This document shows, piece by piece, positions 1 through 13,199 of a stretch of 13,199 bases of DNA. Within the stretch, counting starts at the first letter, position 1, and each line of letters begins with the position of its first letter. The translations under genes were made by a program, and so were the position numbers. Below the pieces are notes generated by a model that searched no databases, was not told the origin of the DNA, and worked only from the letters and a program-made list of their open reading frames with translations. This DNA comes from Selaginella moellendorffii (Eukaryota; Plantae; Lycopodiophyta): assembly GCF_000143415.4 (NCBI RefSeq), contig NW_003314556.1, forward strand, positions 1-13,199, read 5' to 3'.

Positions 1-1
1 T

Positions 2-1600
2 CGCGAGGAACACGTCCGAGTTGCAGCTGCTTACTCCCGCCGCCTGCGAGTGGAGCGCCATTCCCAGCTCCAGGGACTTCACTTTCACCAACCTGTTGCC
101 AACTCCCTGTCCCTGTTCCTTCTCTGCGATGCTGGCGCAGGCCTTCAGCGCAGCGACGAAGCTCCGGGCGTCCCGGACGCAGCCCTGCCGCTGCATTTGC
201 TCGTGCAGCTCCAGAGCCAGATGACCATCGCCGTTCTCCGCGTAGGCGAGCATCAGAACTGTCCACGAGACAGCATCACGCTGCTGCATGGCGTCGAAGA
301 CTCTGCGAGCGTCGCCCAAGCTTCCACACTTGGCGTAGACGTCCAGGAGAGCGTTCGTCACGTAGATGTCCGTGTCAAGCCCGGCATCTCTGGCTTCTCC
401 ATGCACCCGCGTTCCCCTCTCGAGGGCCTCGGCCTTGATGATCGAGTTCGTGTCCACTTGCCGCGAGCTTTCTTTCTCGGCAAGACCACTGCAAGCTCTC
501 AACGCGGCAACGAAGCTCCGGGAGTCCGGTGCTAAGCTTTGTTCGCGCAAACGCTCGAAGAGATCCAAGGCCAGCTCCTCTTCACCATTGTCGGCGTGTC
601 CCAGCATCAGCGCGTTCCAGGACACCACATTGTGGCAGCGCATGCGATCGAAAACTCTGCGGGAGTCCAGCAAGCTCCCACACCTTGCGTACAGGTCGAC
701 GAGAGTGTTGTTCACGAATATATCCGTCACGCAGTGCTGAAACCGAGCCGCCTGGGAGTGAAGACCCATCCCCTCCTCCAGCGCCACCATCTTGTCGCCA
801 CTTTGATCCGCTATACTGCCGCAGGCTTGAAACGCAGCGACGAAAGTTCGAGCGTTTGGACCGCAGCCTCGATCTCCTCCTCTCAACCGAGTGAATAACT
901 CCAGCGTCACCTGTGGCTCTCCATTCTCTGCGTATCCCAGAAGCAATGCGTTCCACACCACCACGTCGTGAGAAGGCATCCTGTCGAAGATGAGCCGAGC
1001 ATCAAGCATGCTGCCGCAGTTCGCATACATGTCCACCAGGATGCTCGAAACAAACACGTCTTCGCAGCCACTTCTCGAGGCCTGCGAGTGAATCGCCATG
1101 CCTTGCTCGAGAGTCCCCAGCTTGACACGCCTGCCGCCAACTTCCAGAGGCTTTTTTTTCGCTGCGGAGCCCGTGCACGCCTTGAGAGCGGCCACAAAAG
1201 TCTGAGCATCCGCTTGCTGAGAGCTCTCGTGTTGCATGCGTCGAAACAGCTCCAACCCGGTCTCGTATTCTCCGTTGTCGGCATAGCCCAAGATCAATGA
1301 AGTCCAGGACACCGCATTCCGGGACTCCATGGCGTCGAAGATCTCTCGAGCCTCCGCCACATTCCCACACTTTGCGTACATGTTGACGAGGCTACTGGCC
1401 ACGAAAATGTCGGAGTCCTTCCCGTATTTAACTGCATCTGCGTGAACTCTCCTTCCGTTTTCGATGTCGCTCGAGCTCGTCGAGGCTTTCAGCGCTGAAA
1501 GAAGAACGGGAACGCTTGGTTTCACCCGGTGGAGTGACTGTACGATGGCTTTTAAGATATCAGCTGGGCCTCGGAAGCTCTTGAACTTCCGCTGCAGCAT
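2..1600 (-). CDS. PLS-class pentatricopeptide repeat (PPR) protein, probable organellar RNA-editing factor; 3'-truncated by the window edge
   Basis: Manual translation from the ATG at 1600 stays open for 533 codons to the window edge. It contains repeating S-P-L triplets, e.g. IFVASSLVNMYAKCGNVAEAREIFDAMESRN / AVSWTSLILGYADNGEYETGLELFRRMQ / AQTFVAALKAC...LEQGMAIHSQA, with four S, four P and four long L motifs plus a first L-like motif. An in-frame TGA lies directly upstream of the ATG. Any E/DYW domain would be outside the window. Confidence 0.93.
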   Translation of the reverse strand, partial: MLQRKFKSFRGPADILKAIVQSLHRVKPSVPVLLSALKASTSSSDIENGRRVHADAVKYGKDSDIFVASSLVNMYAKCGNVAEAREIFDAMESRNAVSWTSLILGYADNGEYETGLELFRRMQHESSQQADAQTFVAALKACTGSAAKKKPLEVGGRRVKLGTLEQGMAIHSQASRSGCEDVFVSSILVDMYANCGSMLDARLIFDRMPSHDVVVWNALLLGYAENGEPQVTLELFTRLRGGDRGCGPNARTFVAAFQACGSIADQSGDKMVALEEGMGLHSQAARFQHCVTDIFVNNTLVDLYARCGSLLDSRRVFDRMRCHNVVSWNALMLGHADNGEEELALDLFERLREQSLAPDSRSFVAALRACSGLAEKESSRQVDTNSIIKAEALERGTRVHGEARDAGLDTDIYVTNALLDVYAKCGSLGDARRVFDAMQQRDAVSWTVLMLAYAENGDGHLALELHEQMQRQGCVRDARSFVAALKACASIAEKEQGQGVGNRLVKVKSLELGMALHSQAAGVSSCNSDVFLA

Positions 1601-1662
1601 TCAAGCACTGTCATACCTCGTCCCACCGAAGACCCAAACTCAGGAAAACCCTAGTAAAACCT

Positions 1663-1836
1663 CTGTAGAGTTACAGATAGCAACATTGATCAGTTTGACA
1701 TTTTTTAAAACGTACCAATGTATCAAACCTCGATTTTTCGTGAATTTGCCGGTAACAGTGAACCTATCGATTGTCGACACTGTAACTTGGAAGAGCAAAT
1801 CACTGTTAACAAAAAACGGAAAAGAAAAATACATAC
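1663..1836 (-). other. Two probable GT-AG introns upstream of the PPR ATG (about 1836-1786 or 1780, and 1715-1663 or 1651)
   Basis: The donors are GAG|gtatgt at 1836 and TTG|gtacgt at 1715. Both have T-rich bodies and candidate acceptors (ttccaag/ttacag and ctctacag/ttactag). Lengths of 51-65 nt match the other introns in the window. Confidence 0.5.
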
Positions 1837-1959
1837 CTCTTCCAGATAATTCCATTCGAGACACTGCATATTTTCCGGAAAGCTTCGAAGAAAAAGGAAA
1901 AACGGTTCTTAGCATTTCTTCGTCTTGTCTTCTAAAGGAAGGCTCTTTGTTCCAACGCC

Positions 1960-1967
1960 ATATATAT
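1960..1967 (-). promoter_or_regulatory. Candidate TATA box for the PPR transcript
   Basis: ATATATAT lies about 45 nt upstream of the first leader ATG (1915) and upstream of the putative leader introns. This is a motif match only. Confidence 0.35.
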
Positions 1968-2218
1968 TGACGGAAAACAGGCAAAGAAAAAGAGCCAAGC
2001 CAGCGAAGGAGCGCTTGCCTGGATAAAGGCTTGAGGATGCCCGGATGACGGCAGGGAGCGTATGTGGAGCTGGAGATGCTCAGTAAAGGGCTGGGTCCGC
2101 TCCTTCAAGGACCAAAAACCATGCTAGGTCCTTTGCTCCAAGTACAGTGGTCTGATATCAATAACTCACATCAGTTCGTTTGTAAGGAAGCTTAAAAGAA
2201 TTTAGACGTACCCATTCC

Positions 2219-5200
2219 TTATGCTGAAGCAACTTTGAGGGTAAGCTTCACGTTCATGGCTGCCAATTCTGCTGCGAGATACCGGAAGACGAATGGCATG
2301 GCAACCTTGACGACTCCAGCATTCGACTGGCAGACTTTGCAGGTAGCCTTCTTGGGTTTGTTCCGAGCACCGACTGCGGGCTGCTTTGAGGGTACCATCA
2401 GAGTTGACAGCAGACTCCCGCAAGTGGTGCACACGTCTCCAACGTGGTAGTCGGAGGATGTGTGCAATCGATCGTGTAGTAAATACGCTGCACCGTGTGC
2501 AAGTAGCGAGTCACGCTCCATCTCTCCAAAACGTATGCCTCCACCGAGCTTGCGACCACCTACTGGCTGTCTAGTGACGGGATTGATAGCACCGAGCGAG
2601 CGGACCTGGGATAAAGACCACATTAATCCGATTTTCAGTTCTCCGAGTTGAGTTACCTGAAACTTGTCCGAAACCATATGTCGCAGTCGCTGATAATACA
2701 CAACACCGATGAAGATCTCACAGGTGAGTTCCGTTCCTAGCAAACCGCTGTACATAACCTCGGTGCCATGGTAATTGAAACCGTGCTGTGCCAGCTGCTC
2801 CCCAAACTCACTAATCGCGGGATAATGCTTATCTTTACCCTTGTAGCCGCTTCCTGTTTTACCATCTTTTGCATCTAAAGCTGCTGAGCTGCTTCTAAAG
2901 GGAGTCGAATCCACGTACTCGCCTCGAAGAACGCCGGCCTAAAATAGGCATGAAGCATAAGGAGCACATCGCTAGTTCGCTAGTACCTTGGCAGCCATAG
3001 ACTCCATAAGCATACCGATCGTCATACGAGACGGGAATGCGTGGGGATTGATAATAATATCGGGACGCATCCCGGTGACAGCCGAAAATGGCATGTCGAT
3101 ATCTGGCCACAACTGTGACAGAATTCCTTTCTGTCCATGGCGACTGCTGAACTTGTCACCAATAACCGGGTTTCGATCATGGCGGAACTTCACAGCGATC
3201 TGCAGAGAAAGCCAATTATTGGCATGCATCGAGATAAGGAGATTGTGACCTTTTGAAGTGGGTCTCTGCCATGCCCGATGGCAATGACGGAATCTATGAC
3301 GACATTTTCTGCAGCTTTAAGCTTATGTAGCTTCGCATCACCAGTCATTGTATTCAAAACACTGCAATAAGGATCTCCATTATGCATAGTCTGCAGAGAA
3401 AACGATTAATAGCATTTCGAGCGGATTTAATCAGACCTGGCCAATGTGTGGAAGACCGTCCACGTCAAGAAAATTATGTATATTTCTCTTCCCAGTTGGT
3501 CTTGAAAAGAGGTTCACAATTCCATCAGATTTTTTTTGCAGCAAACTTAAATCGACATGCTCGGTCTAAAAAGAAAAAACATATCAATTTACAAAGGACA
3601 AAGCAAAAATCACTGTCAAACAGCACCTTATAGATTTGTCCATGTGCTAAACCTCTCTCCATCGATGATTTGTTCATAATCATAGCATCTTCCATGTCAA
3701 AACTACATGAAAACCACTCAAATTCAAACCTTAAAATGGATCTCAGTTAGCTTTACCCTGTGTACGCTAACACTGCAACAACAGCGTTGGTGCCAAGTGG
3801 AAATTCGTCCATGTTGTACTTTTTGTAATTAACGTTGCGCGCAACAGGAGACTGAGGGTTCTACAAGAAAAGCAAAGAATATGGCTAACACAAAGAACAC
3901 TTAAATCTAGTCTTACCTGAAGATTGTACATTTTGTGATCCGTTCTAAACTTCAAAGCCTGTGAAGCAAAGCCTAGCGTTTGTTTTCCCATCTGTAGAAA
4001 CTGTTAGAAAAACTAAACGTGATGTAGCGCTCGTATAAACCTGGCACTGGTACATATTTCGAGGACTTTGATTGTGATCCGACCAAGGTGTTGAGCTTGC
4101 AACCACACTCAACATAGCCGTCGGATGCAGTTCAATGTGAGTTGCTGGTGGAGCTGAAGGTGTTCGACCGCAATTTCCTCCGTCGGGGCATGCAATTTCC
4201 ATGTATGCCTGCACATAGAAGCTTAAAAGTGAGCTTATAAAAAATTATAAAACCTGTTCGAAGGCAGAGATAAGTTCAATAGCTCCTGTATCAAGTTGCT
4301 TCACTGGGCGAAGAAACCGTGATGGCGTCGTGTACAGAAACAAGCCAGGGTAAGCTCCAGCATACGTGCAAGGAACATATCCAATCTCTAGATCGATAGG
4401 GACCTGCACTAACACGTTAGTTCAAGCAGAACAGCAGTAAAAAACGGTGGCAACCTGAGAACCCTTGGTCACTTTCAAACTTCGTAAGTGAGAAACGGTT
4501 TGAGGTATGTTTCCAACCGGCATATAGCCGAGTACACACCCGTCAAGGAGAACCGCCAGATACTTGGGAGGGCCTGACAACGCCAATAAAGGTGAAATCG
4601 AAACCATGCCGAGTTGAGCTAACACCGTAGCAATAGTTCGATGAATAACCTTGGGGTCCTTGGGATGATTATTTTGATCGAGGTCAGTGGAAATTTCTGA
4701 ACAACAGAAAACCGAGTTAGTTCCCGTGACATTGAGCAAAATAAAAAGCTTACTGCACAATGAGCTTAAATGAGTGAGCAACCCACAAGGTTCACCATCG
4801 GGAGTGTGAACGGGGCAAAGAAATCCCCACGATCTACACATCCATAAAGTTAAAGGGACTGGAGTAGAATCAGTGTCCTTACTCTGGTAGTAGCTTGCGC
4901 ACGGATGTAGTTCTCTGTCTTGCAAAAAAAGCTCCCCTATGGACGGAACGAAAATGAGATATGAATCTGAAAAAATTCAGCTTTTCGGCTACCACGCTAA
5001 AACCATTTGCCTAAAGATGAGAAAATGAGCACCACAAAGAAACACGTTGTACTCAACCTGCTGAAGGTCCATATGCGACTGGGATTGAATATTTCCAGTG
5101 CTTAATAAATATTCAATCCGTTTGCCTATATCCACAGCATTATTTTTCTCCACAATTTTTAAAACCTTTGCATCTGAAAAGAGAAGTTTGGCCGCCATCA

Positions 5201-7153
5201 GAAAATGAAAACGCAAATCATACGGTCGCTTAAGTCGAACTCTTCCTTGAGTTGCATTTCCCTTTGCAACAACCTCTTGCACCTGTAAAGCCAGTCTTCT
5301 AGTCTATCCTGAAATACATATTTGTAACCAAAGCAGAACATTATTTGTAATGTTTACCTTCAAATAGATATTCATCAGATGTCCGGGTAGTAAGAGCTCC
5401 TGATGTTGTAAAGTATCGGAACTATCAATCGAGGCCGACCCATCCACAACCGCAAAAAGCTTGTGCAGCATATGACTGAGCTAAAAAACACAATTAGACC
5501 AAGAAAACACACCAATCAACTTACATGAGCAAGTTAAACTTATCACGGAAATTGTCCAAATGTACAAAGACAAATCTCCTCAGAACATCCTCTCCGACCT
5601 GAGGATGCGAAGACGAGTCAAACACTTATGAAATAACGCTAGTCTTACCTCGGCGTTGGACATACTAGACAGCGCCTCCAAAGGAGTCCGAAATGTTTCA
5701 CCTGGTTTACAGTTCGCATATAAAAGATAAAAACAAAACAAAAAAAAAGTATTTCCATCAGGCTTACCAATATAACGAAGGCAATCCAAACGTGTAAGGC
5801 AAGGTTGTCGTTGCGTCTCTTCAATAATGATTCTTGCTCTTTGACTTATAAGCTGGCTTCCAACTGCACCTTTGGACTGCTCTTGCCCTTGGACGTGGAT
5901 GCCACTCAGCTGCTCGAAAATTTCTCGGTCACTTGTGTCCATGAACGCCTGCACGGACAGTCAGTAAACAAAAGATGCAGGTAACGTAGCAGCACCTTCA
6001 AAATTATTCCGACCGGAATCACAAACTCCTGCCTCCGAATCCTGAAAACATTTGCTCAGTCGTAACAAGCAATAACAATGTTGTGACTTACACAAAACCA
6101 AGCCTAGCCGTGCCATGATGCAGGTAGTAAAGTTTGATAGTTGACCCTGTTTGGTCTGGTCTCACACATCTGAACAAACACAGTAACAAAAGGGCCCATA
6201 AAACCGCCTATGTATACCTCATCATCAACCCGATGTCAGAGAATCCTGCTCCTCTGTTTTGAAACGCATTTCTCCTTATAGCAATTATCTGTTCAAACAC
6301 ATCCCAAAGTTCAAGCGCCATGATATTTTCTATGCGACCATACATGATTTCGTTTCGGTACAATGAGCATTCGTATGATTCTTTCAATTCCTTTCACAAT
6401 GAAGTACCTACAAACAAGTAGCTGAGTTACTATCAGGAAAGGTTTGAAGGTAGAGACCATACCCTCCCATCTCCGTGCCCTCCTCTTTCAAAGAAATAAG
6501 CTTTTGTGGCGACAAGCCTCTCAAATGGCAAAGGCTCGACTACAAGAATTTACTCAAATTTAAGGAAGAAATGAGAGCAGAAACCAAATACCTTCAACAT
6601 TATAGGCAGCTTTCCAAGCGAAAGTTGATGGTGTCTAGTCATTGAACCGTAATCCAAGATAAGCTGGATATTGAGCGCGCCAGTATAGCTCAAGAACCCT
6701 TGCCGGCACTACGATAAAATAAACTATAAGGAAGAAGAATCAAAGAAAAAAACTACTGCTCACACCTCCTTTGGAAGAAGACGATGCTCCATTGCCTTCT
6801 CCTTGAGATCCTTCACGGGCGGTTGGACAACAGGCTTGTCGAGCGTCAGTGCCAAAACAACGTCAAGGGAAAATCCAAAATCTCCAGAATGAAATCCATC
6901 TAGCAGTGCAAGGCAATGCGCCTATACTCATCCAAAGGATATAAATCAGCTTATTCCCAGTCGAACCCTGCTCGATCTCCACCGGCGCGATCCCCTTCAC
7001 TGCTTCCACCAGTCCCCGCTGCACGAAGTAGTCGAAGGAATCGATGTGAGGCGAGACGAGATCCTCCAGCGCCTTGTACGCTGCGGAATCGGGAATGCGC
7101 GGCGGTCGAGATGTCGTCGCGCCGTCCTTCTCCTTCTTCCTCTTCTTCTCCAT
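2219..7153 (-). CDS. NRPA2: DNA-directed RNA polymerase I second-largest subunit (RPA2/RPA135 family), about 27 exons
   Basis: Manual splicing gives a continuous frame from the ATG at 7153 to TAA at 2219-2221. Motifs include [145 protein letters not shown] and a C-terminal CTTC...CKVC zinc site. The [31 protein letters not shown] and [11 protein letters not shown] variants are Pol I type. First exons are 7153-6943, 6848-6766, 6708-6592, 6539-6463, 6407-6344, 6288-6218 and 6169-6092. Confidence 0.96.
6849..6942 (-). other. U12-type (minor spliceosome) AT-AC intron, intron 1 of NRPA2
   Basis: The 5' end is ATATCCTTT (6942-6934), the branch-site-like sequence is TTTTCCCTTGAC (6873-6862), and the terminal AC is at 6850-6849. 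Removing it joins ...[16 protein letters not shown]...LLPKE in frame. Confidence 0.9.
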
Positions 7154-7426
7154 GCCTAGAACCCTAAACCCGCAAAACCCTGGTTATAAACGTGATACCT
7201 TTATATGCCATATTTTCCTCGTCGGCGTCTCATTCGTGCCAGGTGTCGCGCTTTTGGTTCGTTGGCCAGGGTTTCTAAAGAGTAGCGTCACTCTTGCTGC
7301 GGTGCCCCACTCTCTTCGCTCGATCGATCTGCAGTAGGGTAAGTAGAGCGCAGCGCCGCATTTCCATCGATTTTACTCGCTCAGCCGATCGCCTTGATCT
7401 AAAAGGTAGATCCTAGATCGCGACAG
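7154..7426. promoter_or_regulatory. Compact divergent (bidirectional) promoter region between NRPA2 and fructokinase
   Basis: Only 273 bp separate the two opposed start codons. The region contains telo-box-like AACCCTAA (7160-7167) and AAAACCCT (7174-7181), TATAAA (7185-7190), and a probable fructokinase 5'UTR intron donor AGG|gtaagt at 7339. Confidence 0.6.
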
Positions 7427-8998
7427 ATGGCCGCGTCTCCTGCTTCTCAGATCTCGCAGCTTTCGACGGGATTGCCGCGGCAGAGCTTCCTGTTTGGGGA
7501 TAGACCGCAGTGCTTGAATCTGAGGAGAAGTAGCTCGAGCTCCAATTGTCTCTCATCGTCAAAATCAGGTACTGGAGCTCTGTTCTACCTTTTTCTTCTC
7601 CTGGCTTGATGGACGCTTCACTGTGTAGGATCTCCTAGAGCGGTGGATTCCGTGAGAGATCCCAGCTCCAATCTAGTGGTGTGTTTTGGAGAGATGCTTA
7701 TAGACTTCGTTCCAACAGTAGGGGAAGTTTCTTTGGCCGATGCTCCAGCGTTTAAGAAAGCTCCTGGAGGAGCTCCAGCCAATGTTGCTGTTGGTATCTC
7801 TCGGCTGGATGGAAACTCTGCTTTCATCGGTAAGGTGACAATCTAATCTATGATCACCTTTTCCAGCTTTCAAACAAAATTTTCTAAGTTTTTTGGTTCT
7901 CCACCACTTTGCTTTTACCAGGTTGGAGAGGATGAATTTGGTTTCATGCTCGTGGACATTCTCAAAGAGAACAAGGTGGAAAGCAAAGGCATGCGTTTTG
8001 ATCCCGGTGCTCGCACGGCTCTCGCGTTTGTGACTCTCCGCAAGGATGGCGAGCGCGAGTTTATGTTTTACCGCAATCCTAGCGCGGATATGTTACTTAA
8101 GCCTGAGGAGCTTGACGCTGACCTTATCAAGCAGGTATCAAAAGTATTACTTCACATCACTTGCGTTCTTACTTGGCGTGATAACTTCCAGGCATCCATT
8201 TTTCACTACGGCTCTATCAGTCTCATCGCGGAGCCTTGCAGATCCGCTCACTTGGCCGCGATGAAAATTGCCAGAGAAGCTGGAGCGGTCCTCTCGTATG
8301 ACCCCAACTTAAGACTTCCGTTGTGGAGCTCGGCAGAGGCTGCGCGCACAGGCATCAAAAGCATTTGGAACGAAGCCGATATCATCAAGGTTTGTGTGAA
8401 TGAGTTCTTTTATTTTTCAAAGGTCTTAAGTTTCCAAGTTTCTAAGTTTGCTCGGTGGCTTTAAAATTTGAAGATAAGTGAGGAGGAGATCACATTTCTA
8501 ACTGAAGGAGGTGACCCTTACAGCGATGAAGCAGCTCAAGCTCTCATGCATCCAAACTTGAAGCTCTTGCTAGTGACCGAAGGCGAAGGCGGCTGCCGCT
8601 ATTACACAAAGGTTCCAGTTTTTCTTTTGTTTAGCCTTGTCTTTCCTTGGTTTTTCATGTTCGCTTACTGTTACAGGAGTTTCTTGGTCGTGTGGACGGT
8701 ATCAAAGTCGACGCCGTCGACACAACAGGCGCAGGCGATGCGTTCGTCGCTGGAGCCTTAACTCAGCTCGTAAAAGAGCCATCCTTGTACAAGGTAAGAT
8801 TCGTTGCGTTCCTAGAAATGGAGAATGAATCAAATGTTTTTGTGTCAGGACGAACCGAGGCTGAGAGAAGCTCTCCTCTTTGCAAATGCTTGCGGTGCGA
8901 TCGCAACTACGGAGAGGGGAGCAATCCCCGCCCTGCCGTCGAAATCCGCAGCGTTTCAACTTATAGAAAAGTCGTCTGCCAAAGTCTTGCAGCCATGA
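7427..8998 (+). CDS. FRK: Fructokinase (pfkB carbohydrate kinase family), probably plastid-targeted, 7 coding exons
   Basis: Exons are 7427-7568, 7629-7834, 7922-8134, 8192-8389, 8474-8611, 8677-8793 and 8849-8998; all introns are GT-AG and phase-consistent. Motifs include [79 protein letters not shown], the pfkB signature DTTGAGDAF and [19 protein letters not shown]. Exon 1 is Ser-rich and poor in acidic residues, like a transit peptide. Confidence 0.95.
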
Positions 8999-9169
8999 AA
9001 GTTTTAAGAACACAATTTTTCCTCTTTTTTATCCTGCTTTGGAACTTTTACATTTAAGATATTTAATCGCGAACTCTAAAGTGTTATAGATCCCGTGGCA
9101 GCACCGAAACAGTCTAACCAAGTCAATCCTACTTTTATTGACAAGAAGAACACACGAGTCCCCACAGCA

Positions 9170-10195
9170 ATGGCGATGGCAACATCGGCACGAAGTGTTC
9201 TTTCTTTTCCTCTTGATCTTATCTGTGCATCAAGACAGGAGTAGCTTGAGCGGCCTCCCGCAATTGTGGAAAAATACGAGGGTGTTGGTGTTGTCGAGAG
9301 GATCAACTTGGCTGGCTATGATTTGGAGCGGCTGGATCTCATCGGGTGCGAGCTCCCGTCAATGCTTGCATTCAACGCTTCTGCGAACAATATCTCCCGC
9401 GTTGGCCCGATTCAACAATGCTCACTGTCACAGCTGGATCTGTGTCACACCAAGATCTATGGCCACATTCCAAAGTAGACATCGCAACTTCGATCGGTCA
9501 AGGTTTTGGTCTTGGGGCGTAACAATCTTACTGGGCGATTGCCTGATTCGCTAGGGAACTGCTCGAATCTGGAAGAGCTTAGCCTTGAGCTCACTGGGGG
9601 GATACCATTGAGTTTGGGCAACCTTTCTCACTTGGCTACCATAGATCTGGGATACAACTTTCTTACAGAGAGACTGTGTATTCGGGGACAATGCATTTCA
9701 AGGACTTTCTCTTCCACATAACAACTTTAGAGACGCTTAACCTCAGGATCCTAGTTCTCTCTGGTAATTTACTTACTCAGAGCTCCATTGCTCAGAGCTA
9801 TAGCAAACTGAGAAAGGAATGACAACAAGCTCAATGGCTCAATCCTCGGAAGACTAACTGGGCGATTGCCTGATTCGCTAGGGAACTGCTCGAATCTGGA
9901 AGAGCTTAGCCTTGAGCTCACTGGGGGGATACCATTGAATTTGGGCAACCTTTCTCACTTGGCTGCCATAAATCTGGAATACAACTTTCTTACAGAGAGA
10001 CTGTGTATTCGGGGACAATGCATTTCAAGGACTTTCTCTTCCACATAACAACTTTAGAGACGCTTAACCTCAGGATCCTAGTTCTCTCTGGTAATTTACT
10101 TACTCAGAGCTCCATTGCTCAGAGCTATAGAAAGGAATGACAACAAGCTCAATGGCTCAATCCTTGGAAGACTAAGTCATCTCCAAGTTCTCGGC
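9170..10195 (+). pseudogene. Degenerate plant extracellular LRR (RLK/RLP-type) gene remnant
   Basis: A signal-peptide-like stretch (VFFLFLLILSV) is out of frame with the ATG at 9170. The LRR-like text LSQLDLCHTKIYGHIPK*TSQLRSVKVLVLGRNNLTGRLPDSLGNCSNLEELSLE-LTGGIPLSLGNLSHLATIDLGYNFLT contains an in-frame TAG (9476-9478) and a shortened repeat lacking the conserved Asn. Further frameshifts follow, with the fragment NDNKLNGSILGRLSHLQVL. No TM or kinase region is recognisable. Traces may extend to about 10480. Confidence 0.8.
9530..10174 (+). repeat. Near-perfect head-to-tail tandem duplication (327 bp + 318 bp)
   Basis: Copy 1 is 9530-9856 and copy 2 is 9857-10174; both begin ACTGGGCGATTGCCTGATTCG and end GGAAGACTA. 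By manual comparison they differ by 5 transitions and one 9-bp indel (CAAACTGAG is absent in copy 2). Confidence 0.95.
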
Positions 10196-10602
10196 TAAGG
10201 TATCAGGTTTGAGTGCCGCATGACTGCACAGAAAGACCCAGCAGAACCACCAGTTGCAAAGCTAATCAAGACCATAGCCGCTACATTGTTGTGTGCAAGA
10301 ATTAAAATACATATCAACTTTACTTGGGACACAGTGTCACGCGGACATGCAAGTCTCCTTCACGTACAATGGATCTCCAGAACTGGTTGTAGCTGTGGGC
10401 TGCTGAATGATCTCCAAATTGGCTTACCTTCCAATGCGGGTGTTGGTATCTAAGCTTGAACACCTCAGTGTTCTGGATAGCAAACTCTTAGAAAAAGATA
10501 ACCCGAAGCCTATTTTGCTGATTTAAACACATTTGAAGTCTGAAGGAACCATGACATAGCAGAAGTCATGCCACCAGACCTTTTGAAGGGAAGGCTCGAT
10601 AT

Positions 10603-11830
10603 TTAAGATGCTGAAATGTCTCTCGTGCTCTTATACACGTACGTGTTTAAAGAGAGCATCCATACTCACCACATCTTTTCCACCAGGGGCAGCAGCAGGG
10701 TCTGGCCCTGGGAGGGCAGCACGCAAAGGTTGGAAACAACGACCTGCAGCTAATCCTTTTACTGCACGGAACCGGGGGCGACGGTCTTGGAGAGGGTGGC
10801 GGCGGAGATGGCGGTGGTGGAGATGGCGGTGGTGGAGACGGTGGTAGCTTCTGTTTGACGGGAAAGTAGACGAAGCCATTCACTCCACATCGACCCAGTG
10901 GAAGACCATGGTTTCCACGCTGCAGCCTCATGTAGCCTTGCTCTCCCCAGCTTGTCCCCGCCGAGTTTTTGATGATCCAGTAGTCCTGGCCGTTTTCGGA
11001 TCCGTAGCCGACGATGAGCACTGCTAGATACGGAGTTGCCTGGTCATCTTTGCATGGGCCCTTGTAAATCCCCTGCATTTTTAGTTCAAAGGCTTCAGCG
11101 ACTTGTCCTTCACAAAAGAAAAAAAAAAAGATTTTTTACTGACCCCTTTGTAGCGAAGGAACTCCGGCGCATTGCCATCGATTAGAGCTGTCACGGGCTG
11201 CTTGGCAACCTGCGCGACCATGTCCGTGTCGTCGCTGGAGCCATAGAGATTGTCGAAGTCGTCAATGCCGACGGAGTAGCGGTTCTGGAGAGCACAACTT
11301 TAGTAAAAAACAATGGTTCACGTACTTACATGTTTTCGGCAGGTGGCATTGAAACCTGTGAAGTGGTAATCCGATGCGATCGAGAGGCCATTGCCTGTTT
11401 CGACGAGGTACTCAAATGCGTTCTGGGGAAAGCCGTTGTGGCAGCCATTGGTGCCATAGCTCCGGGAGCAATCCAGCAGCTGCTGCGCCGACAGCTCCAC
11501 CAAAACTCCAGTTGCAATCTTGTTGATTCCCTCGATGGCTTCTGCCGCCGCGAAAGCCCAGCTACCATCTTTCCATCCATGCCATAATATAAATATAAAG
11601 TGAGAAAGCAGGATTGAAGCTGAAGTCCAAGACTTACTCTGGCATCCTTTGCGATCTTTCACAGGTGTGACAGCCCCCAAAGTCCTCCAGTCGATGGATT
11701 TGGGGACAGAGTCGACGTCGCCAAACATTCGGATCCCTGCATCCCCCTCCAGAGTACTATCACTTGCGGCATTTGCATTTGCAGCAAGCAGGAGGAGGAA
11801 CGAAATCGAGACCAAGAGATGAGGAGACAT
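10603..11830 (-). CDS. Secreted papain-like (peptidase C1A fold) protein, predicted catalytically inactive, lacking the I29 prodomain, with a Ser-Pro4 linker and Cys-rich tail (about 327 aa, 5 exons)
   Basis: Exons are 11830-11638, 11568-11330, 11284-11144, 11072-10670 and 10610-10603, with GT-AG introns and the frame preserved. The signal peptide is [23 protein letters not shown]1A motifs include [83 protein letters not shown] and [11 protein letters not shown]. The intron 1 acceptor and the last micro-exon are less certain. Confidence 0.88.
10767..10844 (-). repeat. Extensin-like Ser-Pro4 coding repeat ([26 protein letters not shown])
   Basis: Three tandem 15-nt units of the TCTCCACCACCGCCA type lie in frame within exon 4 of the papain-fold gene. 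Confidence 0.9.
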
Positions 11831-11873
11831 TCTCAGAGAGTCGTTGAAGCATGTAGATACTAGAGAACGAAGG

Positions 11874-11879
11874 TTTATA
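11874..11879 (-). promoter_or_regulatory. Candidate TATA box of the papain-fold gene
   Basis: TATAAA on the minus strand lies about 44 nt upstream of the ATG at 11830. Confidence 0.45.
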
Positions 11880-12178
11880 AAAGCATTTCACAACAGCCCA
11901 CGAGACTCATGCGGGTGTAGGCACTATCAATCGTACATGAACAGACTTTTTTGCTTTGACAAAAAACATGTGCGAAAAAGAGAATTCATGAGGTCTTCAC
12001 TTTTCCCCACGGCGGACTAACCACATTTTGCAAAGATTAAAGATGGTGTGACATTTTTCTTTCTGTTTCTTTGGCTTCTTCAAGAAGATTGCCTTTTTGT
12101 GTTGAAATTACTTTTCCATCATTATCTATTCGAATTTTTCTTTTTCAATTTTTGAAATGTTTAAGGTTAAGTGTTTTT

Positions 12179-12444
12179 TAATTGGGCCTATAAATTTAAA
12201 TTCAAAAATTTATATTTAGGTTTTGGATCCAATTATGTTAATTAACTAAAAGAATCACCATGTTAGTTTGGTCCACTAAATGAGATTAGCAATCCACCAC
12301 ACTTATCTTGACACTTTAGTGGACTGTGAAAGAACCCATCCACATCCACATTACTTTCCAATCTCTATAGCAATTGTAAGAAAATTAATGAACTCTTTTC
12401 TAAGTTTACACCAGAACCACCACATTAATTTTCACTTGCTATAG
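12179..12444. repeat. AT-rich intergenic stretch with serial imperfect inverted repeats (possible non-autonomous transposon relic)
   Basis: Arm pairs are TATAAATTT/AAATTTATA (12189-12197 and 12206-12214) within TAATTGG/CCAATTA; GTCCACTAAA/TTTAGTGGAC (12271-12280 and 12315-12324); and CTATAGCAA..GAAAATTAATG / CATTAATTTTC..TTGCTATAG (12365-12390 and 12423-12444). Confidence 0.55.
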
Positions 12445-12545
12445 CTATCTTCATCTTAGAATAAATTGACAATCTGGTCCTAACCAGCATTAAAAAATTC
12501 AACTTATTATATACTACTATTAACTAATAATTCTCAAGAATTAAC

Positions 12546-12590
12546 TAGGGTTTATGGACTACACTGAATCTTCTCGTGAGTTTAGGGTTT
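12546..12590 (+). promoter_or_regulatory. Two telo-box motifs (TAGGGTTT) immediately 5' of ATGs at the cis-prenyltransferase start
   Basis: TAGGGTTT, the reverse complement of the AAACCCTA telo-box, occurs at 12546-12553 and 12583-12590. Each copy is directly followed by ATGGA. Confidence 0.55.
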
Positions 12591-13160
12591 ATGGATTCCT
12601 CGAAGCTCCGGCTCGTGAGCGGCAGCGTCCGGCAGCGCAGTTCAACACCGCTCGCCCCACTATCGCAATGCCTCCGTCCCGACAGGAGCACGGAGAATCC
12701 GCGCGTGTTGATCAGGGCAAGCGGCGAAATCCTGGCATCGCAGCAGCAGGGTCATTCGATCGGGCAGCAGCTGCTCGCGCCGCCGCCGCCCAGTCCCGCC
12801 CGCCAAATCCCGCGGGAGCTGGATCCGCTGCGAATGCCCGAGCACGTCGCGATTATAATGGATGGGAACTCTCGCTGGGCCAAGCTCCGGGGATTGGCCA
12901 CCGACAGGGGGCACGAAGCCGGCGTGCATGCATTGCGAGAGATCGTGGCCGCCTCCAGCCGCTTGGGTATTAAAACTCTCACCGTCTTTGCCTTCTCCAC
13001 CGAGAACTGGCGTCGTCCCACGGTGCATTCCTTTTCCCCTTGTTGTTCTCCTTCCATTTTGATGAACTTGCCTCAGGATTGCCGTGATCCAGATTGAAAT
13101 CCAGTTCCTGATGCAACTGTTCGAGAGAGTGATCTCGGAGGACTCCATGAACATCTTCAC
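12591..13160 (+). CDS. CPT: cis-prenyltransferase (undecaprenyl/dehydrodolichyl diphosphate synthase family), probably organelle-targeted; first two exons, gene continues beyond the window
   Basis: Exon 1 is 12591-13022, exon 2 is 13093-13160, and the next donor gtaagt is at 13161. Conserved regions are [21 protein letters not shown] and [15 protein letters not shown]|[10 protein letters not shown]. They are preceded by an Arg/Ser/Pro-rich N-terminal extension. Confidence 0.93.
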
Positions 13161-13199
13161 GTAAGTCTCTAGTTTCTTTTCCTAGTGTTTGTTTATCAT

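Follow-up and report, generated by a model that had tools for sequence, protein, structure and literature searches.

Does a papain-like gene whose active site has been lost simply decay, or is it kept for a role other than proteolysis? The question is raised by a minus-strand gene in a 13,199-nucleotide (nt) stretch of the Selaginella moellendorffii genome (contig NW_003314556.1, positions 1 to 13,199; the whole stretch is called the window below). When its four exons (11830-11638, 11568-11330, 11284-11144 and 11072-10647) are joined, 332 codons and a stop lie in one open frame of 999 nt, from the ATG at 11830 to the TAA at 10649-10647. The 332-amino-acid (aa) product consists of a signal-peptide-like start, a papain (C1A) domain, a Ser-Pro4 linker and a Cys-rich tail, in that order. 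An initial annotation, made from the DNA alone, had described the gene as a candidate pseudo-protease, better explained by selection than by random decay.

This description is supported by spliced transcript contigs, low ratios of non-synonymous to synonymous substitution rates (dN/dS, 0.24-0.35), between-run variants that are 7:1 synonymous, active-site substitutions that recur in independent runs, and the grouping of five catalytically dead proteins in one clade. The gene is an intact, expressed and selected C1A homologue whose site is predicted from its sequence to be non-functional, that is, a non-peptidase homologue. We consider it likely that it encodes a working, non-catalytic papain-like protein, probably secreted, that serves in binding or as a scaffold rather than in cutting.

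Loss of the papain active site

The substitutions in the cleft (papain numbering) lie at the following positions, all assigned by alignment:

11651-11653, minus strand: Arg at the position of the oxyanion-hole Gln19
11561-11568, minus strand: last two bases of an inserted Asn codon (first base at 11638), Gly, and Ser at the position of Cys25
11025-11030, minus strand: Tyr-Leu replacing (Asp)-His159, with a three-residue insertion before it
10959-10967, minus strand: Asn-Ser-Ala, with Asn175 kept (10967-10965) and Trp177 changed to Ala (10961-10959)

HMMER alignments of P0007, a paralogue with active-site motifs identical to those of the window protein, to ficin A (E=3e-55) and zingipain GP-II pair Arg with Gln19, Ser with Cys25, Tyr-Leu with His159 and Ala with Trp177. 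A MAFFT alignment of the window protein itself with active relatives gives the same four placements. Gln19, Cys25, His159, Asn175 and Trp177 are each invariant in the active relatives aligned (72/72), so the four changes are not a matter of chance. The codons named in the initial annotation (Arg 11653-11651, Ser AGC 11563-11561, Leu 11027-11025, Ala 10961-10959) are thereby borne out, as are its assignments of Gln19 to Arg, Cys25 to Ser and His159 to Leu. Its fourth change, NSWG to NSAG, is real at 10961-10959; counted as the loss of a catalytic position it does not stand, as it is Trp177 that is gone. The catalytic Asn175 (10967-10965) is retained, and the phrase "whole catalytic apparatus" is for this reason an overstatement.

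The Cys25/His159 dyad is nevertheless replaced by Ser and Leu, and the Gln19/Asn175 pair is broken by Arg at position 19, though Asn175 is kept. The protein has neither the thiol nor the imidazole, and the oxyanion Gln is missing as well, so the papain mechanism is unusable. Both active-site loops are remodelled beyond mere substitution: the Cys25 loop is longer by one Asn, which follows Cys22 and precedes position 25 and whose codon intron 1 interrupts, and three residues are inserted in the His159 loop ahead of position 159. The six structural Cys (aa 63, 98, 107, 141, 198 and 253) are intact, as claimed, and all align to conserved Cys columns; by this alignment the Cys of the three conserved disulfide pairs (papain Cys22-63, 56-95 and 153-200) are kept. 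An assembly error at the active-site codons, which the initial annotation had asked to be checked, is excluded: contigs from four runs belonging to four studies agree on the substitutions, and the variants listed spare all four codons.

A clade of dead papains

A word search with the exon 1-2 frame found P0001, a 273-aa S. moellendorffii protein annotated as "zingipain-1", and a search with P0001 led to three more proteins of the same species (P0007, P0008 and P0009). P0007 (332 aa, also "zingipain-1") has the architecture of the window protein. P0008 ("cysteine proteinase 7", 477 aa) has no prodomain, carries Ser25 and Leu159, keeps Trp177 and ends in a LamG/ConA-like domain, while P0009 ("zingipain-2", 374 aa) keeps an I29 prodomain and has Gly25, Thr159 and Arg177. 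P0001 and P0007 share the Arg/Ser/Leu/Ala substitutions and the four-exon structure with the window gene. The databases name these siblings as proteases, and the names do not reflect the dead state. Even dead members only 50-56% identical to P0007 keep intact frames and the six structural Cys; the other matches listed are at most 49% identical and are mostly XBCP3/RD21-type granulin papain-like cysteine proteases (PLCPs) of seed plants. The 332-aa window protein was absent among the matches listed for the P0001 search, though expected near the top, and is apparently missing from the collection.

In a maximum likelihood (ML) tree the five dead proteins form one clade (ultrafast bootstrap, UFBoot, 100; SH-like approximate likelihood ratio test, SH-aLRT, 99) with the topology (P0009,(P0008,(window,(P0001,P0007)))), placed beside the active granulin PLCPs. 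The exact sister group is uncertain because the branch is long and the tree set holds no active Selaginella PLCP. On scaffold GL377565.1 (locus L001) about 3 kb separates P0001 from P0007, and their neighbours are unlike those of the window gene, which has about 82.5% DNA identity to both and whose exons 2 and 3 have the same lengths as theirs. Its own neighbours, this level of identity and the shared exon structure make it a third locus of the family, and in the ML tree it branched off before the P0001/P0007 duplication. On this evidence the window gene is a member of a "dead papain" clade that has to date been seen in S. moellendorffii alone. If the root lies outside this clade, the most parsimonious course would be that catalysis was lost first and the prodomain later, since P0009 still has one. 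The dead domain occurs alone (P0001), with LamG (P0008), with an I29 prodomain (P0009) and with the window-type tail, and because it is found alone or with differing partner modules it appears to be the constant working unit.

Word searches with the exon 1-2 frame, P0001 and exon 4 found no dead signature outside S. moellendorffii, in a database where the presence of other lycophytes is uncertain. We do not claim that dead papains are absent beyond this species; the 72 other aligned relatives are all catalytically intact. Regarding the orthologues that the initial annotation had proposed to compare, the relatives from the same genome are intact genes with a dead site, and the sampling is confined to that genome.

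Selection versus decay

dN/dS was estimated by the Nei-Gojobori method with bootstrap 95% confidence intervals (CI). For the window gene the value is 0.32 against P0001 (CI 0.20-0.50) and 0.35 against P0007 (CI 0.23-0.51). The papain domain gives 0.24 in the comparison with the paralogues (one-sided Fisher test, p about 1e-6), the linker plus tail 0.36 (p=0.001; a soft figure owing to the repeat alignment), and the signal plus N-terminal part 0.6 (not significant). The ratio that the initial annotation had called for is significantly below 1, both overall and in the papain domain. Variants between four runs point the same way, with 7 synonymous changes, 1 non-synonymous change (F304I, in the tail) and one in-frame 6-nt insertion.

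These figures bear on the possibility that the gene is a transcribed relic, a duplicated protease gene that lost its activity and has been drifting, with expression and open frame as leftovers. Real pseudogene debris does exist in the family: a decayed copy with stop codons, deletions and about 38% identity lies at L001 9348-9830, and P0126 and P0127 are truncated members. The youngest pair, P0001 and P0007, has a dN/dS of 0.65 with a CI reaching above 1. The window gene, however, does not appear to resemble the decayed copies. Its dN/dS is significantly below 1, its variants run 7:1 in favour of synonymous changes, and its sole indel is in frame; members 50-56% identical to P0007 keep their frames and six Cys, and splice sites are conserved in three paralogues. 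A drifting relic is thus very unlikely, and maintenance by selection is the reading we follow. An isolated exon-1-like piece, 89% identical to window exon 1, was also found at L001 7620-7826; together with the decayed copy, lying between and upstream of the intact paralogues, it is debris of repeated local duplication.

Transcription and splicing

The stretch was found in twenty public runs from ten studies. Over 10200-12400 we examined four of these runs (X1, X2, X8 and X10), which come from four studies and carry three organism labels. The gene model used is as follows:

10593-11859, minus strand: transcript, approximate extent (spliced contigs of X1, X2, X8 and X10)
11874-11879, minus strand: TATAAA motif, candidate TATA box (read in the sequence)
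11638-11830, minus strand: exon 1, coding (translation; weak PF00112 match, profile positions 1-23)
11569-11637, minus strand: intron 1, 69 nt, GT-AG, splitting the inserted Asn codon (sequence and contigs)
11330-11568, minus strand: exon 2, GSWAF...CRKH, left lobe of the papain domain (PF00112, E=3.4e-19; contig joints)
11285-11329, minus strand: intron 2, 45 nt, GT-AG (joint 11284/11330 in four runs)
11144-11284, minus strand: exon 3, 47 codons (translation; a 141-nt exon is also present in both paralogues)
11073-11143, minus strand: intron 3, 71 nt, GT-AG, junction shiftable by one G (contig pieces 11071->11143 in X2, X8 and X10)
10647-11072, minus strand: exon 4, coding, stop TAA at 10649-10647 (translation; PF00112, E=1.1e-17)

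Spliced contigs carry the joints 11284|11330 and 11568|11638 in 4/4 runs and the pieces 11071->11143 in three of the four (X2, X8, X10), and the observed joints equal the predicted junctions exactly. A transcript with the predicted junctions, which the initial annotation had asked to be confirmed, therefore exists, and its reading of an intact frame with GT-AG introns holds for the joined exons (three introns, 332 open codons). As the contigs span about 10593-11859, the transcript reaches the TAA and includes the tail without further splicing. The 5' end lies near 11855-11859, just downstream of the TATAAA motif at 11879-11874, whose function as a TATA box is putative, and the 3' end near 10591-10595; contigs cannot fix the true ends. 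Spliced contigs prove processed RNA and give neither expression level, strand nor exact ends. X1 contains a second spliced form, about 10% divergent, which agrees with P0007 at all but two of the 21 sites listed (19 of 21); the paralogue P0007 is therefore expressed too.

Intron 1 (11569-11637) is open in frame, so that its retention would add 23 residues to the active-site loop without a stop. The equivalent intron of the paralogues contains a stop, and intron 1 of the window gene is removed in all contigs examined. The linker is polymorphic in length between runs, with the frame kept: in X8 (organism label B) the Ser-Pro4 repeat is lengthened at 10781 by 6 nt, in frame, and four substitutions lie nearby.

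Sequons in the former active-site loop

All five dead proteins carry an N-glycosylation sequon in the active-site loop (residues 17-27), which none of the 72 active relatives has. It reads N-G-S in the window protein, P0001 and P0007, N-C-S in P0008 and N-C-T in P0009. In the window protein (11638 + 11568-11561) the Asn is the inserted residue and the Ser is the replacement of Cys25, and a glycan, if the sequon is used, would sit on the old catalytic centre. A second sequon, N-A-T at aa 138-140 (exon 2), lies just before the Cys95 equivalent; its pattern (N-[AGS]-T-C) occurs in 4/5 dead proteins and 0/72 active relatives.

The loop sequon also bears on whether the protein could still be an enzyme, with Ser25 as nucleophile in a silicatein-like or serine-type chemistry. 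The change from Cys to Ser does keep a potential nucleophile, and Asn175 is in place. Against this, position 159 is Leu, so that no general base is evident, and Arg has taken the place of the oxyanion Gln. The Ser is also the last residue of the N-G-S sequon, and P0009 carries Gly25, so a function conserved in the clade cannot depend on Ser25. We regard residual serine-type catalysis as extremely improbable.

A further-reaching proposal, conceivable to us but doubtful, is that the clade has converted its former active site into one for N-glycosylation. A selected N-glycan would cap the cleft of a papain fold that has no prodomain, and the family would comprise lineage-specific secreted glycoprotein modules that bind through a surface other than the cleft. 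Such a capping glycan would perhaps take over from the prodomain in covering the cleft or in assisting folding.

Fold and domain layout

Beyond the active site, the protein is laid out as follows:

10860-11707, minus strand: papain-fold (Peptidase_C1) domain, aa ~42-262, across the four exons (profile matches, proxy model)
10767-10844, minus strand: Pro-rich linker with Ser-Pro4 repeats, aa 268-293 (translation)
10650-10766, minus strand: Cys-rich C-terminal tail, 9 Cys in 39 aa (translation)

The exons were searched singly against profiles, and the joined 332-aa model was used for translation, alignment, dN/dS and trees. Exons 2 and 4 match PF00112 (Peptidase_C1) at the E-values listed above, and the end of exon 1 matches weakly. 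P0007 (83% identical, same architecture) served as proxy for fold and searches. It matches the Peptidase_C1 profile at E=9e-59, and its AlphaFold2 (AF2) model, built from an 80-row alignment, has a block-mean predicted local distance difference test (pLDDT) score of about 74-98 over residues 41-270. The minimum within this range falls in the enlarged loop preceding position 159, and values drop below 50 in residues 19-31 and in the Cys-rich tail (296-332). In Foldseek comparisons with cathepsin S, barley EP-B2, actinidin, ficins and others, target-normalised template modelling scores (TM-scores) are 0.90-0.96 and root-mean-square deviations 1.3-2.1 Å. By homology and predicted fold, the window protein is a member of the C1A family.

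Exon 1 encodes a signal-peptide-like stretch (aa 1-21, 11830-11768), a short N-terminal stretch and the start of the mature domain (VPKSIDW...VKDRKGCQ). The protein begins with M-S-P-H followed by a hydrophobic core and A-N-A|A, a putative signal peptide. The mature domain opens at aa 42, about 20 residues beyond the signal-peptide-like stretch. No I29 prodomain was found upstream of the gene by tblastn of four I29 prodomains against the window; the only match was to the "DVPxSxDWR" start of the mature domain, and a hidden prodomain exon is ruled out. Nor do the contigs hold a further 5' exon, as they start about 25-30 nt upstream of the ATG with no upstream joint. The gene is without the autoinhibitory I29 (ERFNIN-type) prodomain, a point that the initial annotation did not raise.

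The domain is followed by about 26 residues rich in Ser-Pro4 and then by 39 residues with nine Cys. The tail has no Pfam match at E<=10 (PF00396, granulin, was tested), and it scored E>20 with a custom hidden Markov model (HMM) for which 65 granulin domains were taken from the closest relatives. MAFFT aligns some Cys and an "FSWK...AVCC" stretch of P0007 with granulin PLCPs, without statistical support. With neither Pfam nor the custom HMM significant, we do not class the tail as a granulin; a granulin origin is plausible from its position alone.

The linker raises the possibility that the protein is a structural wall glycoprotein with a papain head, or else a partner or regulator of active PLCPs (through competition for substrate or prodomain, or in a complex). 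Ser-Pro4 repeats are an extensin-type motif, and the clade-specific sequons suggest a glycoprotein. The linker contains several Ser-Pro4 units and not one Tyr, however, so it lacks the extensin Tyr cross-link motifs and is only extensin-like. The neighbours of the gene in the window are housekeeping genes and weak leucine-rich repeat (LRR) fragments, with no protease among them. Both versions of this alternative seem quite unlikely compared with a binding or scaffold role of the dead domain itself.

A probable non-catalytic binding or scaffold protein

In the role we favour, the protein would travel to the apoplast or cell wall, because it has a signal-peptide-like start and neither a KDEL nor a prodomain sorting signal, and its remodelled papain domain would there serve for binding or as a scaffold. 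The Ser-Pro4 linker may be a spacer, and the Cys-rich tail may provide anchoring or a second binding element.

A more specific version of binding, named in the initial annotation beside a ligand receptor and a wall scaffold, is that of a decoy or sponge for cleft-directed inhibitors of cysteine proteases (from pathogens, or endogenous and cystatin-type), which would shield active PLCPs or bait an immune receptor. A probably secreted, catalytically dead protein with its fold kept, from an expanded lineage-specific family, would suit such a role, and the guarded decoy PLCP Rcr3, with Cf-2, is a precedent (PMC7468133). However, the surface that inhibitors contact is heavily altered: it has lost Gln19 and Trp177, Asn aligns with Gly65, the Cys25 loop has a one-residue insertion and a sequon, and three residues are inserted before position 159. 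The domain dN/dS of 0.24 bears no sign of an arms race. Since the cleft is remodelled, a classical inhibitor decoy is less likely than had been implied, and we consider it unlikely.

Several points weigh against the broader reading of a maintained, secreted binding or scaffold protein. The start of the window protein is probably a signal peptide, a call made from visual inspection and from how it aligns with those of active PLCPs. The fold was modelled on P0007 as proxy, and the dead clade is sampled in S. moellendorffii only. Purifying selection is moderate, not strong, and the young pair P0001/P0007 has a dN/dS whose interval (CI 0.31-1.6) includes 1 and is uninformative. A glycan on the loop sequon, if used, could block the cleft, in which case the binding surface may lie elsewhere.

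Relation to known systems

The closest precedent is soybean P34 (Gly m Bd 30K), which PMC4274471 (citing Kalinski 1990 and Ji 1998) describes as a C1A homologue with a mutated site and silenced protease activity, reported to bind syringolide elicitors. The window protein is likewise a plant C1A homologue silenced by active-site mutation, and for such a protein P34 is the published example of a role in binding (PMC4274471). Unlike P34, the window protein is without a prodomain, has also lost His159, Gln19 and Trp177, and has a Cys-rich tail behind a Ser-Pro4 linker. Synthesis of P34 includes a prodomain, and the protein occurs in the seed vacuole or associated with oil bodies. P34 is not named among the best 120 relatives, and we infer an origin independent of it.

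Among active relatives, XBCP3/RD21-like granulin PLCPs come closest both in score (43-49% identity) and in the tree, and have the same order of protease domain, Pro-rich linker and Cys-rich C-terminus. They differ in having an I29 prodomain, a fully intact Q19/C25/H159/N175/W177 set and a true granulin domain (PF00396). Tomato Rcr3 is made with a prodomain. It resembles the window protein in kind, being a secreted PLCP that reportedly works in immunity as the binding target of an effector (PMC7468133); unlike the window protein, it is described there as a secreted protease.

Surveys of C1A proteases or PLCPs that include Selaginella count genes or name RD21, RD19, ALP and CTB orthologues, and mention no dead members (PMC2474614, PMC5762910). 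No description of the dead clade was found in the literature searched. Silent C1A homologues are already known from P34; the window protein differs in its missing prodomain, the loss of four conserved cleft residues, its linker and tail, and its place in a sequon-bearing clade so far seen in S. moellendorffii alone. To our knowledge, soybean P34 apart, hardly any work exists on the dead relatives of plant papain-like proteases. The clade offers a natural system for the role of a papain fold that does not cut and for folding without a prodomain, and it means that some of the PLCP "proteases" counted in lycophyte genomes are not enzymes.

Genomic neighbourhood

The dead-papain gene stands head-to-head with a cis-prenyltransferase gene (PF01255), and a pfkB sugar kinase and an Rpb2-type RNA polymerase subunit are also encoded nearby. 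Nothing among the neighbours within the window suggests a dedicated partner gene. The spacer between the dead-papain gene and the divergent cis-prenyltransferase gene (11860-12575, about 0.7 kb) is AT-rich (GC about 0.31) and may be a shared bidirectional promoter region. On the plus strand, short LRR-like open frames occupy 9266-10048 and include a near-duplicate pair (9506-9721 and 9866-10048). Their Pfam LRR matches are weak, and they probably belong to a fragmentary or intron-rich LRR gene that lies downstream of, and convergent with, the dead papain.

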